From Rebecca billardiae RCC1528 (lineage: Eukaryota > Protista > Haptophyta): a stretch of 64,000 bases of DNA. Made by a program: the position numbers and the translations under genes. The notes under the pieces were generated by a model, which worked only from the letters and a program-made list of their open reading frames with translations, was not told the origin of the DNA and did no database searches. Within the stretch, counting starts at the first letter, position 1; each line of letters starts with the position of its first letter. This document shows, one piece after another, positions 54,109 to 62,364 of the stretch. The stretch spans positions 2,480,001-2,544,000 of the forward strand of contig OZ251226.1 of the NCBI GenBank assembly GCA_965240325.2. Direction: 5' to 3'.

Positions 54109-55227
54109 TAGTCTAGTTCAGGGATTCACCCGGACTGCTCGTGAAACGCACCAACACCGGTCGGTGTTGGTTAGCTGGGCGCATGGCTGCCCTTGTGGTG
54201 CGCGGTGGCGACGAACATATGCCGAGCACGACGCCAAGACGGCCCGCGCACACCAGTAGAGACGGGCTAGTGGCGTCGTACGGCCCCAGCGTGCCCTACT
54301 GAGGCGCTTGAGCCGACATCCTGCGCCCAGTTGAGGCCGTACGTTCGTGCGGGCTCGTCTGCACACCCATCGCCGGTGTTGGTTCAAACGTGCGGGCGCG
54401 GCGCGATGTAGCACACCAAGGTGAGGGGTACTGTGGTGGGGGACGTGTTGGTGCGGTGCTGGCACGCACTCTCCTAGCGTCCTTTCCCCGCCAAAGCCTC
54501 CGAGCAAGTATGAGTACGCGGATTGACATGAAGGCTCACCAACTAGTCACCCGTCTTCACGTGTGCGGCCGCCATCTAGGCATGGGCGTGCTCGATATTT
54601 TGCGGACAAGGTGCGAGCGTGCTCGACCACAGGGAGTTAGACAAGCATAGTGCTGTGACATGCTCCTCGGTAGCTCTGCGACTTGTCAGCAGCAATGGCA
54701 CGCGCGGCACGCGCCAAACAGGCTCACTGTGACGCAGCATGCAAGGCAGCATTCACAGCCATGAATAAATAACGAAATGGCCGAAAATGGTCTGTGTGGT
54801 GGTATAACCGTGAGCGAAGCCTTACTTGCGTGAATCTCCAGACCGATGGGTCGTACGACAAGGCCGAGCTAGGAGAGTGCGTGCCAGTACCGCACCAACA
54901 CGTCCCCCACCACAGTACCCCTCACCTTGGTGTGCTACATCGCGCCGCGCCCGCACGTTTGAACCAACACCGGCGATGGGTGTGCAGACGAGCCCGCACG
55001 AACGTACGGCCTCAACTGGGCGCAGGATGTCGGCTCAAGCGCCTCAGTAGGGCACGCTGGGGCCGTACGACGCCACTAGCCCGTCTCTACTGGTGTGCGC
55101 GGGCCGTCTTGGCGTCGTGCTCGGCATGTGTTCGTCGCCACCGCGCACCACAAGGGCAGCCATGCGCCCCAGCGAACCAACACCGACGGTGTTGGCGGCT
55201 CCCGGACTTTTTCCCTGAACTAGACTA
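54109..55227. mobile_element. 1119-bp non-autonomous long-TIR element (TAG...CTA termini, ~370-bp TIRs, TGCA on both flanks), Academ-like
   Basis: tgca|TAGTCTAGTTCAGGGA ... TCCCTGAACTAGACTA|tgca. Arms ~54109-54479 and ~54867-55227 are near reverse complements. The superfamily is inferred from termini only. Confidence 0.8.
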
Positions 55228-55342
55228 TGCATGCGCGAGAAGCCGAGAAAAAATAAATCATCGCGCGAATTCTGGCGATGACGATATAAATCTGCATGCA
55301 CGAAGATCGCTGCTCGTCATCAGCCCGTTCGCCACTGCCGCG

Positions 55343-56539
55343 ATGCGCTCGTCATGTCGCGGCGATTGGGCGAGCCGGACGCACCACCTTGCCGGCAAAC
55401 GCGTGCTGGTGACGGGCGGCTGTGGCTACGTGGGCGAGCAGATTGCTCTTCGTCTGCTTGCCCTCGACCCTCCAGTGGCGCACCTGCGCATTCACGACAT
55501 ATCCGGCCCAGGCCCTTGGCCGGGCACCTTTGCCCTGGCAGGGAGCGACCGCGTCGAGTACATACGCGGTGACCTTGCAGCCGGCCCGCCGCCGTGTGAG
55601 GGTATCGATGTGGTGCTGCACTTTGCGAGCTACGGCATGTCCGGTCACGAGATGATCGCCAACCCTTCCAAGATCCGAGCGATAAACGTGGGAGGCACGG
55701 TTCAGCTGCTCGAGTCGGCACGTGCGTGTGGCGCGCGAGCCGTCGTCTACCTCTCGAGCCAGAACGTGGTGTTCGGCGGCAAGCCCATCTACGACGCGGA
55801 CGAGTCTCTCGCGTATTTTCCCGTGGATGAGCACATCGATGAGTACAGTCGGTCCAAGGCCCTCGCCGAAATGGCCGTCCTTCGGGCCGACGACAAGGCA
55901 GGCCTGCGCACTGTCGCCATCCGCCCCGCGTCCATCTACGGCGAGGACGAACGCAAGCACCTTCCTCGCATCGCCCGGAACATCGCCGCTGGCATGTGCA
56001 CGGTGGGCTTTGGCGACCGCCGAGCGCAGTCCGAGTGGGTCCACATCGACAACCTCGCGGACGTGGTGCTGAGCGCCGCGGCGTCGCTGCTGGCCGAGCC
56101 GGAGCTGAGCGGCGAGGTGGGCGGCCAGGCGTTCTTCGTCTCGGACGGCACGCCCATCAACATGCTCGACTTCTTTGCGCCCATCGCCAGCGCCCTCGGC
56201 CTGCCCGCATGCCTGGTGCGCGTGCCGGTGGGCCCCGTCCTCATGTTCGCACGCGCGTGCGAGTTTGTGTGCACCCTCATCCTGCCTGTCGTCAGCCTCG
56301 AGCCGCTGCTCACGCGCACGGAGGTGCTCAAGGTGGCGATTCACCACACCTTTTCGAACAAGAAGGCCGCGCGCATCCTTGGCTATGTGCCGCGCTTCGG
56401 CAGCGAGGACGGAATGCGCCGAGTCGCCGCCGCGTTTGCTGCCAGCGACCTCGCGCGGGACCTTCGCGCTGCCCGGGTGCGCGCCATGATCTCCGCCGCC
56501 ATGTGCTGCGCGCTCGTCGTCGCGCTCGTGCTGCCGTAG
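55343..56539 (+). CDS. SDR42E1: 3-beta-hydroxysteroid dehydrogenase-like extended SDR (SDR42E1-like)
   Basis: VLVTGGCGYVG, HFASYGMSG, INVGGT, YLSSQNVVFGG, YSRSK, RPASIYGEDE, WVHIDNL, GQAFFVSDG, PLLTRTEV, C-terminal TM. The upstream part of ORF 54794.. is TIR read-through. Confidence 0.9.
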   Translation: MRSSCRGDWASRTHHLAGKRVLVTGGCGYVGEQIALRLLALDPPVAHLRIHDISGPGPWPGTFALAGSDRVEYIRGDLAAGPPPCEGIDVVLHFASYGMSGHEMIANPSKIRAINVGGTVQLLESARACGARAVVYLSSQNVVFGGKPIYDADESLAYFPVDEHIDEYSRSKALAEMAVLRADDKAGLRTVAIRPASIYGEDERKHLPRIARNIAAGMCTVGFGDRRAQSEWVHIDNLADVVLSAAASLLAEPELSGEVGGQAFFVSDGTPINMLDFFAPIASALGLPACLVRVPVGPVLMFARACEFVCTLILPVVSLEPLLTRTEVLKVAIHHTFSNKKAARILGYVPRFGSEDGMRRVAAAFAASDLARDLRAARVRAMISAAMCCALVVALVLP

Positions 56540-56817: not shown

Positions 56818-59270
56818 TCACTGGCTTGCCAGCCGCACAGCCGCAAGTAGACATGTCGCCGAGCTGGCGGCGCTTCGGACAGCGTTGGTGACGCCGGCAA
56901 TGGTCGAAACCACCATAAGTCCTCCATACGTGGCAGCGAGCGCGAGGGCGCGCCGAGGCACGCTCGGCGCAGCCGTCGCGGCCAGACCGCTGTCGATGGC
57001 CTCCTTGATGGCGAGGAGCCCGCCCGGGCCCGTCAGCGCGTACAGGTCGAAGCCGCCGGACTCGGTGCGGCGTGCTGTCTTCATGATGTGCGCGAGCACC
57101 GCCGGCTCGGCTGCGTGCAGCGCGCGCGCCGGCGCGGCGAGCACGTGCGTGAGTGCGTGGAGGAGTGTGCCCGAGCGGCGCATCGGCGGCGGCAGCGCGG
57201 CCTTCAGGATCGACGCGTACGACGACGCGACGACACCGTCGACGACGATGTCGCCGTGCAGCGTGATGGGCGCGTACAGCCCCGCGCGCTGCACCTCCGA
57301 AACGGACGTCACAACGGCGGAGACCGCGCCGCTGCCGCCGCCAGAATCGACGACGCTCATTGCCATGCCGACGCGCACGTCGTCAGCGCGCACGTACGCG
57401 CCGTGCGCGAGGCGTGCGAGGTGGTCAGGCGAGAGCTCGAGGGCGTGGCCGCTCGACAGCTCGACGCGCACGAACGCATGCTGCACAGCGGCGCGCCTGT
57501 CCTCGTGCGCGCTCAGGTACACAGTCGAGTACGCCGCACCGCCGTCGACGAGCACGCGCTCGCCCGGCTCGAGCGCGTCCATCCGCTTGGGGCCGGCAGG
57601 CGTCGTCACCGTCGCGTGCGCGGGGAAGCAATCATTATTGCACGTGTAGATTAGCGTGACCGAGTCCTCACACCAGCGGTCGCAATGATTGTCAAGGGTG
57701 CACTGGACACACACGCCTTCCACGCAGCCTCGCAGCAGATCATCATCTGCGTTCTCATGGGCGGCCTTGGTGGAGCAGTCGGCGTTGGCGAGGCACTCGA
57801 CGCAGCTGCCTGCGTCGCATTTGCGCTTCGGGACGACGTAGTGCTCGGTGTAGCAGTTGGCCTCGCAGTCGGCATCGCCGGTGCAGGAGGTTGTCTCCAG
57901 CCGACGGCGTGCTTTGTGGCGCGCTGCATGTCCAGCGTCCACGAATGCGCACGTTGGCTCGAGGCATTCCGCACCGTCCGCGCTCCACGCGGCGCACAGC
58001 GACCGCGGCGAGGGCTCGGTGCAGCCAGGGTCGCCTTCGAAGCAATGGTACACGAAGCACTTGGGTGGCCAGTCCGCGGGCGACGTGCCATTGCCGCGCT
58101 CCGCCAGCCGGCGCTGGCGGTGGTGGTCGTAAGAGTCGGCCGCGTCCAGCCGGCGCAGCCGGCGGCTCGGGCTCTGCGAGAGGACGGTGCCGCTTGAGGT
58201 GATCCAGTACGACGGACCGCCGCCGCCAGACTTCGTCACCTGGTAGTACACGGCGCCATCGATCACCTCGATGGCGACCAGGTAGCCCGACGCCGTCGCC
58301 ATCGACAGCGCAGTGCCCAAGTCCTGGAGCTGGCGGCGGGAGGACGAGCCGCCTTTGCTGATCATCACGGTGCCACTCGTCACGTTGTTGTTGATGGCGT
58401 CGATCACCCCCTGGACCTGTGATAGGTCGACATCGCCCACCTCCACGAGCTGGCGTCCGCCGACCACGCGCAGGCGCCGCCGCGTCTCGTCGTGTTGCGT
58501 CACGCTCACGAAGTTGGCGCCGAACATCACGCCGCGCCCGTTTTTGTCGGTGAGCAGGTTCGAGGCGGAGCGCAGGAATGTCTGATGCAAGGCGCGCGCC
58601 ATCGTCAAGAGCGCGCACAGCGGGCGGGTGGGGTGAGCGCGACTCAGCTGTGGCGCGATTGGCGCGCGTGCTGCAAGGGCGTGCCTCAGGCAGAGCCACG
58701 CTGCAATGGTGATCGCGGTTTGCACGCGCCGATGGCCGCCGCTTGCGTGCCGTGCACACCTCCTTGGTGACGTCGCTCGCGAGGTAGGCAGTGCCAAAGA
58801 TGCACGCGATGAGCGCGACGAATACAGCAGCGAGAACACCAGCAAGGCGCCTGTACCTCTGCCCGCCCTCTCGGTGCTCGAGCATCGCCTGCACCATCGC
58901 CTTCACCTCGGGGGTCGAGTAGCGGTGGTTGCCGTCCTGCGGGGTGGAGCGCAGAGGGAATATGCGTAGATGAGGCGAGTCATGAGTGGCGTATGCGCGA
59001 GACGTGGGGTCGCGCACTTCGGAGGCGCTCTGCGCGAGAGCTGCGCCGCACCAAATCGTAGTCCTTCAGCATCTGCTCCAGCGGGTCGAGTTTTCCGTTA
59101 CCGTCCGCGTCGTACGTGACCACCGATGAGATGGAGGTCAGCCGAGTGCCGCGAGTTTGCTGCCGATCACGCTGCGAGGACGTCGCCGTCCGCTGTGGGC
59201 CAGCTGGCTCGCCCGCAGCGCCGCCGCCGCCGCCAAACATCTGGCCGACAGTGTGAAAGAAGCTCGTCAT
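56818..59270 (-). CDS. Hedgehog-type Hint (Hog) domain protein 1: EF-hand-like, TM, RRL motifs, Cys-rich, Hint, SRR-like, hydrophobic tail (exons 59270-59052, 58936-58760, 58581-56818; ~719 aa)
   Basis: Hint motifs CFPAHATV, LELSPDHL, GLYAPITLHGDIVVDGVVASSYA; EF-hand-like YDADGNGKLD. Two phase-0 GT..AG introns sit at the same positions as in the paralog. Confidence 0.87.
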
Positions 59271-59817
59271 CCTCGGCCTCCCGGCCGGGGGGGGGGGGGA
59301 TACATACGCCTTAACCAAGTGTGCACGTTAAAACATAGTAAACTGTATGGAGATTTGAGATTGCTTCGCTTCGCCCAAATTGAAAATAGTAGTGCTCTGC
59401 CACCAACGCCGACTTCCAGACTTCGTGTCGGCCGCCGACGAATCAGGACACCGCGTCGTCCTACCTGTGTCGTTAAAGCATAGAATGAGTATGACCTCAA
59501 TTAATAATGCTCAAGGGCGCCCATCAAGCTCATAAATACCACGTCGTTAATAGATGCTATGCTGATAATCATCGATGACGTTGTTTTAAATCACACGACA
59601 TATGATACCACATATTATTCGCTGAACTTCCAATAATAAAGTTCAGCAACATCATCAATGGAGATGGTTATTTAAAGAGTGACCATTATGGCGGGCGAAC
59701 CGTCGTAAAATGGTCATCAATAATGGTCACCCCCCTGCTTACAAGTGACCTCACAGTCTCAAGTCAAGAGCCGGGCGGGTCGCCCACACTGCGTCGCAAC
59801 TCGCGAGGACGGGAAGC

Positions 59818-62364
59818 ATGCAGGGCGTCGCCGGGCTTTTCAAGCGCACGGGCAACAATGATGGCGCGTCAGCGCGCGAGCCGGGCGCGACCTCTCGCGC
59901 CAACACAGTGAGGGTCGAGGAGCTCGCGATGTATGACGCGGACAATGACGGCAAGATCGACGCCGTCGAGCGCACGCTCGCGAAGTACGATCTGGTGAGC
60001 GCACGGACGCACAGCCCCTGCAGCTGTCAGCCCATTTGCCCGCATGACCACGTGCGCCATCCCGTCCCGCGCCTGTCCCTCCTGCGTCCTGATGCCCGTG
60101 GCATGCAGAACCACGATGGCAAGTTCTCAGCTGCGGAGGTCAAGACGATCTGCGCCGAGGTGATGGCCGAGAAGAAGGCCAAGCACAAGTACCAGCTCCT
60201 GAGCGCCGTCCTGTGCGTGTCCATAGCTGTGCTTCTGGGCGCGATGTTTGGCGCTGCCGTGCTGGCGGGCGAGCTCTCAAAGGAGGTCCGCCGCACGCGC
60301 GCGAGCACGTGCGCCAGTCCCTGGCGCCCACGAGTCTCGTCATCACGAGTGCAGACAGACAGACAGCCCCACTCGCGCCGATCATCGGCTCATGCGACCC
60401 GTGACACGCGCGCGGGACGGGCGACGCACCAGGTATTCGTCGACGGCGAGACGGGCGTGCAGCTCGGGGCGGATGGCCGGCCCACGCGCACGACGGGTGC
60501 CCGCCCGCACATCGAGCTGCACGACATGCGGCGCAGGCGGCTGGTCGAGCACGACGGCCGCCGTCTGGTCGAGGTGGCCGAAGTGAACTCGAGTGTAATG
60601 AGCTCTGTGCTCAAGCTCATGAATACGTCGGGCCAGACCACGGGCACCGTCGAGGTCGGGACCTCGAATGTGCGCCGCCGCAGCCTCCGCCAGCTCGCAG
60701 AGGTCACCTCAAAGACGCTCTACGCCACCGGCGAGCTCATCAGGTCCTACGTCAAGCGCGTCGACGGCCAGGACGAGACGTGGTACGTCTTCCGGTCGGG
60801 TGTCCCCGGCGACTCGACGCTGTACACGGTCACGGGCGACGGCCAGGTGCTCCAATCGGATCCCAACGTCAATGACCGCCTCCGTCGCCTGTCTGAGAGC
60901 GAGTCCCTCGATGATCACGAGCGGCGTAGGCTGTACGAGGCTGGGGGCGCGTCAAGACCGGAGCCGTGCCTCATCTACCACTGCTTCGAGGGCGATGCGC
61001 GCTGCTCCGACCCGGCGCCGCGCTCGCTGTGCAAGGCGTGGAGCGCAGACGGCGAGATCTGTGACGAGCCGGCGTGCGCGTACGTGGTGTCGTCTGCCGT
61101 GCAGGCTGGGGGGCGGCGGCGCCTGTCCACCGCGGACCCGGTCACCGCGTGCACCAGCTCTGCCGACTGCCAGTCGGGCAACGCGAACAAGCTGCAGTGC
61201 TTGAACTTGATTATTGGCGGCAACGGCACAGGCATCTGCATCGAGTGTGTGAGCAATGCCCACTGCGAAGCACTCCCGCACGGCTGCTATCTCGAGCAGG
61301 GGGATATCCCTGAGCGGCTGTGCGACCTCTCCAACGGCGAGTGCGTGCAATGCCTGCAAGACAGCGACTGCGACGCTGTCACCGGCGCCGGGAATCTGGA
61401 CTTCTTTTGCGACAACAGCACGAGGCGGTGCGTCCAGTGTGTAACTGCCGACGACTGCGGCGGAGGCATGGTATGCTCGATCTATGGTTTCTGCCTCGTT
61501 GCCAACTGCTTCCCCGCGCACGCGACGGTGACGACGCCTGCCGGCCCCAAGCGGATGGACGCGCTCGAGCCGGGCGAGCGCGTGCTCGTCGACGGCGGTG
61601 CGGCGTACTCGACCGTGTACCTGAGCGCGCACGAGGACAGGCGCGCCGATGTGCAGCATGCGTTCGTGCGCGTCGAGCTGTCGAGCGGCCACGCCCTCGA
61701 GCTCTCGCCCGACCACCTCGCACGCCTCGCGCACGGCGCGTACGTGCGCGCTGACGACGTGCGCGTCGGCATGGCAATGAGCGTCGTCGATTCTGGCGGC
61801 GGCAGCGGCGCGGTCTCCGCCGTTGTGACGTCCGTTTCGGAGGTGCAGCGCGCGGGGCTGTACGCGCCCATCACGCTGCACGGCGACATCGTCGTCGACG
61901 GTGTCGTCGCGTCGTCGTACGCGTCGATCCTGAAGGCCGCGCTGCCGCCGCCGATGCGCCGCTCGGGCACACTCCTCCACACAATCACGCACGTGCTCGC
62001 AGCGCCGATGCGCGCGCTGCACGCAGCCGAGCCGGCGGTGCTCGCGCACATCATGAAGACAGCACGCCGAACCGAGTCCGGCGGCTTCGACCTGTACGCG
62101 CTGACGGGCCCGGGCGGGCTCCTCGCCATCAAGGAGGCCATGGACCAAGGTCTGGCCGTGACGGCTGCGCCGAGCGTGCCTCGGCGCGCGCTCGCGCTCG
62201 CTGCCACGTATGGATGGCTGATGGTGGTTGCCACCATCGCCGGTGCGGCGAATACGCTCGGCGTCGTCACCCGCTTCGTGACGACAGCATCTGGCGCCAT
62301 GACAGCCGCAGCTGCCGCGCTACACCTTGGAGGAGCGTTGGCGTCGTGTGTGCCGAACGTTTGA
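59818..62364 (+). CDS. Hedgehog-type Hint (Hog) domain protein 2, paralog of protein 1 (exons 59818-59994, 60109-60285, 60433-62364; ~761 aa)
   Basis: Same architecture: YDADNDGKID, YDL|NHDGKFS, TM, RRL motifs, CxxC-rich repeats, Hint from Cys codon 61507. Both introns are in-frame and stop-free, so the ORF track shows 848 aa. Confidence 0.87.
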   Translation: MQGVAGLFKRTGNNDGASAREPGATSRANTVRVEELAMYDADNDGKIDAVERTLAKYDLVSARTHSPCSCQPICPHDHVRHPVPRLSLLRPDARGMQNHDGKFSAAEVKTICAEVMAEKKAKHKYQLLSAVLCVSIAVLLGAMFGAAVLAGELSKEVRRTRASTCASPWRPRVSSSRVQTDRQPHSRRSSAHATRDTRAGRATHQVFVDGETGVQLGADGRPTRTTGARPHIELHDMRRRRLVEHDGRRLVEVAEVNSSVMSSVLKLMNTSGQTTGTVEVGTSNVRRRSLRQLAEVTSKTLYATGELIRSYVKRVDGQDETWYVFRSGVPGDSTLYTVTGDGQVLQSDPNVNDRLRRLSESESLDDHERRRLYEAGGASRPEPCLIYHCFEGDARCSDPAPRSLCKAWSADGEICDEPACAYVVSSAVQAGGRRRLSTADPVTACTSSADCQSGNANKLQCLNLIIGGNGTGICIECVSNAHCEALPHGCYLEQGDIPERLCDLSNGECVQCLQDSDCDAVTGAGNLDFFCDNSTRRCVQCVTADDCGGGMVCSIYGFCLVANCFPAHATVTTPAGPKRMDALEPGERVLVDGGAAYSTVYLSAHEDRRADVQHAFVRVELSSGHALELSPDHLARLAHGAYVRADDVRVGMAMSVVDSGGGSGAVSAVVTSVSEVQRAGLYAPITLHGDIVVDGVVASSYASILKAALPPPMRRSGTLLHTITHVLAAPMRALHAAEPAVLAHIMKTARRTESGGFDLYALTGPGGLLAIKEAMDQGLAVTAAPSVPRRALALAATYGWLMVVATIAGAANTLGVVTRFVTTASGAMTAAAAALHLGGALASCVPNV

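Follow-up and report, generated by a model that had tools for sequence, protein, structure and literature searches.

Head-to-head haptophyte gene pairs predicted to encode Hedgehog-type Hog precursors with a lineage-specific outer domain

Hog proteins with secreted, cysteine-containing N-termini are known from many protists, including a haptophyte, since the survey of Burglin in 2008 (PMC2362128). Here we describe two such genes, A and B, which lie head to head in a window of 64,000 nucleotides (C8:2480001-2544000; contig OZ251226.1) of Rebecca billardiae RCC1528, a GC-rich eukaryote whose analysed genome comprises 72 Mb in 41 contigs. Like the products of A and B, the described protist Hogs, among them Hog1-3 of Pleurochrysis haptonemofera, carry a C-terminal Hedgehog-type Hint domain with an adduct recognition region (ARR) and are routed to the secretory pathway (PMC2362128); their upstream region is likewise lineage-specific with conserved cysteines, and the cysteine of motif J, the equivalent of animal Cys143, is likewise replaced (PMC2362128). 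Animal Hedgehog precursors (1AT0 and 6TYY) share with A and B the Hint fold, Cys1, Asp46, the histidine of the TxxH motif and the H-x4-P-x-R start of the sterol-recognition region (SRR), and the same chemistry is expected of both, namely an N-to-S acyl shift followed by nucleophilic release of the N-terminal fragment. On balance, we consider it probable that A and B encode precursors with two membrane anchors, built from EF-hand-like loops, an RRL/YHCF outer domain and a Hog domain, that the Hog domain cleaves itself from its cargo, and that the genes undergo pair-wise gene conversion.

The Hog domains of A and B

The Pfam Hog family PF01079 matched both long open reading frames (ORFs) of the locus, which point outward at 56818-58845 (-) and 59818-62364 (+), with E values of 3.4e-25 and 4.1e-25 and 89 bits against a cut-off of 29.7. 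The closest sequence matches of the Hog domain in the PDB were Drosophila and Sonic Hedgehog. A model of the Hint core, with a predicted local distance difference test (pLDDT) score of ~90, superposed on 6TYY and 1AT0 with a Foldseek E value of 5e-12, a target template modelling (TM) score of 0.86-0.87, a root mean square deviation of 2.2-2.3 and 30-32% identity, whereas inteins and BIL domains together shared only 6-18% identity with this core, and inteins by themselves 8-17%. We found no intein-type C-extein, as Hint is followed just by the ARR and a hydrophobic tail, after which the protein ends. Judged by sequence and model, A and B carry a Hedgehog-type rather than an intein-type domain, in agreement with the earlier note, a first reading of the letters that had proposed a Hedgehog-type Hint in both proteins; the fold is nearest to the C-terminal part of Hedgehog (Hh).

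At the junction between cargo and Hint, CFPAHATV aligns with CFTPEST of Drosophila Hh, and its Cys1 is invariant in 18 sequences. The equivalent of Asp46 is kept (HEDR against MDRN), and the TxxH motif reads SPDH against TPAH, with an invariant histidine and a serine for the threonine. In total, four catalytic residues are kept, with one substitution among the five of the animal active site. After Hint, both proteins show an SRR-like start, H-x4-P-x-R (HVLAAPMR or HVLAAPAR, against HWGLAPMR of Drosophila Hh), with a proline that is nearly invariant in 18 sequences, and ARR-like helices modelled at pLDDT 66-74, matching the SRR-like helix noticed earlier. The ARR also has an extra segment of ~14 residues between Hint and H-x4-P-x-R that animal Hh lacks. 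Neither protein had a Pfam match to the N-terminal Hedge (HhN) domain at E<=0.1. Sequence threshold, Hint fold, Cys1, TxxH and Asp46, and the ARR all place the domain in the Hog family, of which autocleavage and an adduct would be expected.

A further Hog fusion was seen in a Logan assembly, where a protein of 713 aa (P0061) joins a copper type II ascorbate-dependent monooxygenase (PF01082 and PF03712) to a Hog domain 40% identical to the one described here.

Gene models, outer domain and predicted membrane layout

Gene A (-) spans 56818-59270 and gene B (+) spans 59818-62364; three exons each were predicted from the DNA and checked by script. All four introns are GT..AG and interrupt A and B at two shared codon boundaries, one following ...YDL and the other ...KE, and exon 2 has 59 codons in A, B and four paralogues on contigs C3 and C12. 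Because both introns of gene B are in frame, a single ORF of 848 aa runs through them; the predicted spliced products have 761 aa (B) and 719 aa (A). The predicted junctions match the continuous sequence of an intron-free relative, P0003 (AKYDKDKDGKF... and TKESFVHRGTGVQ...), which supports the gene models. The features are listed below by coordinates in the window.

59052..59270, minus strand: gene A exon 1, 73 codons; start codon, Gly-rich N-terminus, loop 1 DADGNGKLDPLE at 59076-59111, DL of loop 2; GT donor; conserved in the C3 and C12 paralogues
58937-59051, minus strand: gene A intron 1, 115 nt, GT..AG
58760..58936, minus strand: gene A exon 2, 59 codons; remainder of loop 2 (DGNHRYSTPE), predicted signal-anchor transmembrane helix at ~58778-58846, Kyte-Doolittle 2.56
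58582-58759, minus strand: gene A intron 2, 178 nt, GT..AG
57892..58581, minus strand: gene A exon 3, first part; RRL/YHCF outer domain of ~230 aa, from alignments and an own-genome profile match (E 1.8e-61)
57631..57891, minus strand: gene A variable Cys-rich block, 87 aa with 13 Cys in CxxCxxxxDC-type repeats; no Pfam match; dN/dS (ratio of nonsynonymous to synonymous substitution rates) 0.75 against the C3 copy
56818..57630, minus strand: gene A Hog domain, hydrophobic tail and stop; Cys1 codon 57628-57630; ARR-like helices with HVLAAPAR; PF01079; aligned to the C-terminal part of Drosophila Hh; tail Kyte-Doolittle 1.73
59271..59817, no strand: spacer between the start codons, 547 bp, GC 0.49; presumed shared bidirectional promoter
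59818..59994, plus strand: gene B exon 1, 59 codons; start codon, loop 1 DADNDGKIDAVE at 59935-59970, DL of loop 2; sub-threshold EF-hand and dockerin matches
59995-60108, plus strand: gene B intron 1, 114 nt, in frame, GT..AG
60109..60285, plus strand: gene B exon 2, 59 codons; remainder of loop 2 (NHDGKFSAAE), predicted signal-anchor transmembrane helix at ~60196-60270
60286-60432, plus strand: gene B intron 2, 147 nt, in frame, GT..AG
60433..61131, plus strand: gene B exon 3, first part; RRL/YHCF outer domain of 233 aa; AlphaFold2 model m89bfc7c57f62, pLDDT 83, predicted TM score (pTM) 0.76; 49 relatives
61132..61506, plus strand: gene B variable Cys-rich block, 125 aa with 17 Cys; no Pfam match; poor model, pLDDT 27-52
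61507..62364, plus strand: gene B Hog domain, ARR-like helices, hydrophobic tail and stop; Cys1 codon 61507-61509; PF01079; PDB sequence matches to Hh; Hint core model ~90 pLDDT
56855..57630, no strand: left arm of the inverted repeat (gene A Hog-coding DNA), 776 nt, starting exactly at the Cys1 codon
61507..62282, no strand: right arm of the inverted repeat (gene B Hog-coding DNA), 776 nt

In its N-terminal part each protein has two 12-residue loops with EF-hand ligand spacing, and three of the four show the canonical pattern by eye. In gene B these are DADNDGKIDAVE and, across the intron 1 junction (DL, then NHDGKFSAAE), DLNHDGKFSAAE; in gene A they are DADGNGKLDPLE and, across the same junction (DL, then DGNHRYSTPE), DLDGNHRYSTPE. 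Relatives P0004 and P0006 exceed the Pfam EF-hand cut-off. The first transmembrane helix, encoded by exon 2 of both genes, reaches a Kyte-Doolittle value of 2.6 over 19 residues and has Lys/Arg on its N side, and neither protein has a signal peptide. Because a signal peptide is lacking, the EF-hand-like loops are of a cytosolic type and basic residues precede the first helix, the topology is likely type II, with the N-terminus inside. At the other end, an Arg follows the hydrophobic tail in A, and relatives P0010 and P0007 end in a clear transmembrane helix with a basic tail behind it. Two passes through the membrane are probable for the precursor and would place everything between the anchors in the lumen or outside the cell. 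Exon 3 of gene B encodes four NxS/T sites.

The outer domain occupies ~230 residues after the transmembrane helix and ends in a six-cysteine module, CxxYHCFxGDxxCxxP...C..W...C..P.C, whose CxxYHCFxGD..C part is invariant or nearly so among 43 sequences. RRL motifs punctuate it: the 235-aa outer domain of B contains five, against 0.26 expected, and 0 of 20,000 shuffles reached five. (The outer-domain reference sequences begin two codons, HQ, inside the intron; the results are unaffected.) All 24 aligned relatives share motif 1, and 33 of 38 share motif 4. AlphaFold2 modelled one compact domain (mean pLDDT 83, pTM 0.76), in which motifs 1-4 fall in strands E38-42, E45-53 and E152-154 and helix H157-171, with surrounding pLDDT of 85-95, and motif 5 lies in a low-confidence linker just ahead of the Cys-rich block. 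Placed as they are within the secondary structure of a single domain modelled with confidence, the motifs do not look like cleavage sites; we read them as belonging to the fold or to a basic surface and as candidates for an anion-binding or contact surface rather than spacers between peptides.

No Pfam family matched the outer domain in a search of both proteins. Searches of the model for fold relatives were equally negative: Foldseek against the PDB gave a best E value of 0.077, the ESM Atlas shape search a best TM score of 0.35, the Atlas feature search no usable match, and VIA-align wide a best Z of 4.6, which is under the tool's own stated noise level. The modelled domain has no recognisable fold, a result that falls short of proving a new one. 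When the outer domains of A and B were modelled as a complex, the prediction scored 0.00, with alignments unused and the partner's fold uncertain; it weighs neither for nor against their association.

The outer domain has relatives elsewhere. A word-based protein search, of a collection apparently without this genome's own proteins, returned one match, from the coccolithophore Scyphosphaera apsteinii (MMETSP1333, 32% identity), which is the sole named relative. When 1.84 billion representative proteins were searched exhaustively with a profile, 49 relatives emerged, all on contigs of ~2 kb; 34 had E<=1e-10. In P0003, P0010, P0037 and P0017 the same outer domain is followed by a Pfam Hint, and P0003 and P0010 also have the EF-hand loops and N-terminal transmembrane helix, so the architecture recurs and is not a quirk of this genome. 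Many relatives are Hog-less (among them P0004, P0006, P0024 and P0044) and end 8-11 residues past the module's last cysteine, close to where Hog cleavage would end P0003, in which the YHCF module is joined directly to Hint and RRL motif 5 stands four residues before Cys1. The relatives sit on intron-free contigs of 1-3.7 kb, transcript-like lengths, and include an MMETSP transcriptome; an exact contig look-up of P0001 returned no record. Separately, eighteen environmental JGI contigs (Ga03146xx-Ga03147xx and Ga0073938; L021-L038) of 1-3.7 kb encode the CxxYHCFxGD module. Because most of them come from one sample series, they suggest an abundant transcribed family in that habitat.

Between the outer domain and Hint, the Cys-rich block consists of CxxCxxxxDC-type repeats with no Pfam match, measures 87 aa in A against 125 aa in B, and shows a dN/dS of 0.6-0.75, above that of any other part of the gene. 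Relatives such as P0003 are without it. From these comparisons, the block is best described as an optional, fast-evolving insert.

Almost everything that the earlier note had read from the letters recurred in our analysis: N-terminal EF-hand-like loops, a single transmembrane helix near the N-terminus and a likely type II layout, the RRL-punctuated region with its shared CxxYHCF module, a Cys-rich block of variable length, a hydrophobic if moderate tail, and identical intron positions. Its authoring model had also failed to recognise the domain combination, which accords with the outer domain having neither a Pfam family nor a fold match.

Three inverted pairs and a pattern of gene conversion

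Ten genes of the genome exceed the PF01079 cut-off, arranged as three head-to-head pairs, on contigs C3, C8 (the window) and C12, and four singletons. A profile search confined the RRL/YHCF domain to the six paired genes, and each pair consists of one A-type and one B-type member. The A and B proteins of the window share 58% of their residues overall, and from CFPAHATV until shortly before the end they hardly differ; at the DNA level, 56855-57630 and 61507-62282 form an inverted repeat of 776 nt with 95% identity. In each of the three pairs, the matching stretch starts with the first base of the Cys1 codon and extends for 737-968 nt. Hog DNA is 97.7-98.3% identical within pairs, 92-94% between C8 and C3, and 80-81% against C12. 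Outer-domain DNA of the same type is 92% identical between C8 and C3 and 70-73% against C12, and A and B types share 61-64%.

The outer domains therefore group by type and the Hog domains by locus, from which it follows that the A/B pair predates its spread to three loci and that Hog was repeatedly converted within pairs. This sequence pattern indicates that the Hog halves have been repeatedly homogenised within each inverted pair by gene conversion, with the cargo domains diverging by type; the putative conversion tract is bounded 5' where homology of the cargo sequences ends. Burglin remarked on a far stronger conservation of haptophyte Hog domains than of the regions upstream of them (PMC2362128), and gene conversion within pairs accounts for that remark in this genome. 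Between loci, dN/dS is 0.22-0.45 in both the outer domain and Hog, which points to purifying selection, and all six paired copies retain open reading frames and conserved splice sites.

The spacers between the start codons measure 547, 585 and 431 bp, with a GC content of 0.49-0.54. In the C8 spacer, positions 59300-59720 form an AT-rich core, perhaps an insertion, and the genes flanking the C8 and C3 pairs are ~89% identical although the spacers (L011-L014 counterparts) do not align.

Two further observations concern other genes. At 54794-56539 (+) the window contains a 3-beta-hydroxysteroid dehydrogenase/NSDHL-like gene (PF01073, E 1e-48), tail to tail with gene A. A sterol enzyme adjoining a Hedgehog-type domain is suggestive of a link to sterols, which we considered and rejected, as neither the C3 nor the C12 pair has such a gene next to it. 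Genome-wide, at least 30 exon-level matches exceed the cut-off of the Patched/RND family PF02460 (for example C24:843753-844187 and C22:331268-331720), a large set of Patched/Dispatched/NPC1-like proteins for a genome with ten Hog genes as well.

Proposed processing, its alternatives and known systems

In the explanation that we favour, A and B are paralogues of long standing whose transcription runs outward from a common spacer. Each precursor would consist, in order, of a cytosolic N-terminus with two adjacent candidate calcium loops that might confer regulation by Ca2+, a signal anchor, a luminal or extracellular part made of RRL/YHCF domain, Cys block and Hog, and a C-terminal hydrophobic anchor. 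In the secretory pathway, Hog would catalyse an N-to-S acyl shift at the residue preceding Cys1, and a nucleophile would then resolve the thioester; this would be a sterol should the ARR act like the animal SRR, and otherwise water or another small molecule. The precursor would thereby be split into a type II surface protein and a membrane-held Hog remnant, and the new C-terminus of the surface protein, at the end of the Cys block, may bear a lipid and fold back onto the membrane. The A/B pair would have been duplicated as a unit to three loci, with conversion from one inverted copy to the other holding its Hog DNA at 98% identity. That Asp46 and the SRR-like motif are still present speaks for an alcohol, for instance a sterol, as the nucleophile; as Cys143 and Gly-1 are lost, the animal pathway cannot be assumed.

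Several observations weigh against this explanation. The equivalent of Cys143 is a serine (ASSYA against ASCYA), and in animal Hh this cysteine forms a branched thioester, with C143A and C143D abolishing processing (PMC12054796). Non-metazoan Hogs also replace it (PMC2362128), so the serine speaks against an animal-type mechanism and not against Hog membership. The residue preceding Cys1 is Asn (B) or Asp (A), not the Gly of Hh. The ARR and tail were modelled at pLDDT of just 40-74, the tail is only moderately hydrophobic (Kyte-Doolittle 1.7), and the outer-domain model was built on 43 sequences. For the calcium loops, the Pfam EF-hand score was 16.5 bits against a cut-off of 25.4, with loop 2 split by the exon junction and searched unjoined, and the loops are just six residues apart and hence not a canonical EF-hand pair. 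Finally, the C8, C3 and C12 spacers do not align and showed no conserved promoter element, so that co-regulation of A and B would follow from their arrangement alone.

The main rival is a plain shedding module in which Hog transfers its cargo to water or a non-sterol nucleophile and separates the outer domain from a membrane-anchored Hog remnant, leaving no lipid, in the manner of SEA or GAIN autoproteolysis. The serine at Cys143 and the absent Gly-1 fit such a module, as does the extra segment before H-x4-P-x-R, and Burglin chose the name ARR precisely because the adduct outside Hh is uncertain (PMC2362128). Hog-less relatives, moreover, produce the same ectodomain with a free C-terminus. Yet all ten paralogues retain Asp46, whose counterpart in Hh activates the hydroxyl group of the sterol (PMC12054796), and the SRR-like motif and helices are likewise kept. 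We regard shedding without a lipid as possible, if somewhat unlikely.

The RRL motifs could instead be secretory protease sites (kexin-like or PEXEL/TEXEL-like) of a polyprotein or pro-peptide that frees several peptides, the last of them Cys-rich and lipid-modified. They occur far above chance and are conserved across the family, four of the five in B fit RxLxE, and motif 5 lies in a linker of low confidence before the Cys block, or, in P0003, almost at Cys1. Motifs 1-4, however, lie within the strands and helices of one domain, the segments between motifs are not repeats of one another, and relatives do not keep the acidic residue at +2; on the grounds of modelled position and the +2 residue we set the PEXEL/TEXEL reading aside. 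The earlier note's suggestion that a Cys-rich peptide is released fares poorly for similar reasons: it would need a second cleavage, RRL 1-4 are inside a compact modelled domain, and P0003 has no Cys-rich block. We judge a polyprotein very unlikely. That the copies are inactive or unexpressed, with Hint a structural relic or the duplicates silent and alike through conversion only, is scarcely credible, since against one changed residue among the five of the animal active site stand the four kept catalytic residues, dN/dS of 0.2-0.45 between loci, six intact ORFs with conserved splice sites, and relatives on intron-free, transcript-length contigs that include an MMETSP transcriptome.

Returning to lipid-modified, two-anchor precursors, one might speculate further that the A/B pairs are the two halves of a haptophyte surface signalling or adhesion device, in which each type II protein is esterified with a sterol at its outer end by its own Hog to give a doubly anchored, Ca2+-coupled loop protein, and the two RRL/YHCF domains form a heteromer or a ligand-receptor pair. 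We think this unlikely; if true, non-animal cells would possess a lipidated surface system in the style of Hedgehog whose cargo has an undescribed fold. A sterol adduct, if confirmed, would extend protein sterylation beyond Metazoa and show whether Hog chemistry runs without Cys143. The locus also offers a testable cargo family of marine protists, composed of EF-hand-like loops, a transmembrane helix and RRL/YHCF, with or without Hog, that has no Pfam model and no detectable fold relative. Because Hog-bearing and Hog-less members end nearly alike, they provide a natural comparison for what Hog cleavage adds. In addition, the three loci are a clean case of domain-limited concerted evolution, in which the autoprocessing half is homogenised in inverted pairs and the cargo diverges.

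How much of this is new depends on the level considered. A non-animal Hedgehog-like system, as the earlier note put it, would be no new class, as protist Hogs were described in 2008 (PMC2362128). Literature searches found no description of the RRL/YHCF cargo, the two-anchor layout or the paired conversion pattern, so the search for the architecture divides: cargo, layout and pairing were not found described, and the Hog class with lineage-specific cargo was already known (PMC2362128).

Within the same genome, the four singletons (L007-L010, at C24:1466235, C23:31487, C3:2319708 and C17:2026862) have the same Hog subtype and tail, with 51-53% identity to gene B over Hog and tail. They differ in having a signal peptide, a Ser/Pro-rich stalk, with SPPP or PSPIVP, and a small Cys knot, are unpaired, and have neither EF-hand loops nor the RRL domain. 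Further afield, warthog, groundhog and quahog of Caenorhabditis elegans and Hoglet of choanoflagellates likewise join Hog to unrelated cargo domains in multigene families, but they are secreted by means of a signal peptide and their cargo (Wart, Ground, CBM) is unrelated to RRL/YHCF. Compared with animal Hedgehog, A and B have no Hedge (HhN) domain, carry Ser for Cys143, Ser for the Thr of TxxH and Asn or Asp for Gly-1, and are predicted to be anchored at both ends. Compared with the other protist Hogs, A and B are predicted to enter the secretory pathway through an N-terminal signal anchor behind presumably cytosolic EF-hand-like loops and not through a cleaved signal peptide, their cargo is a defined RRL/YHCF domain of ~230 aa, a putative hydrophobic anchor follows the ARR, and the stronger conservation of Hog is explained by conversion within head-to-head pairs. 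Non-animal Hog domains have been catalogued but are not known to have been tied to a defined cargo, topology or function. The class to which A and B belong, a protist Hog with lineage-specific cargo, is known; the cargo, the predicted membrane layout and the paired conversion have no description in the literature searched.

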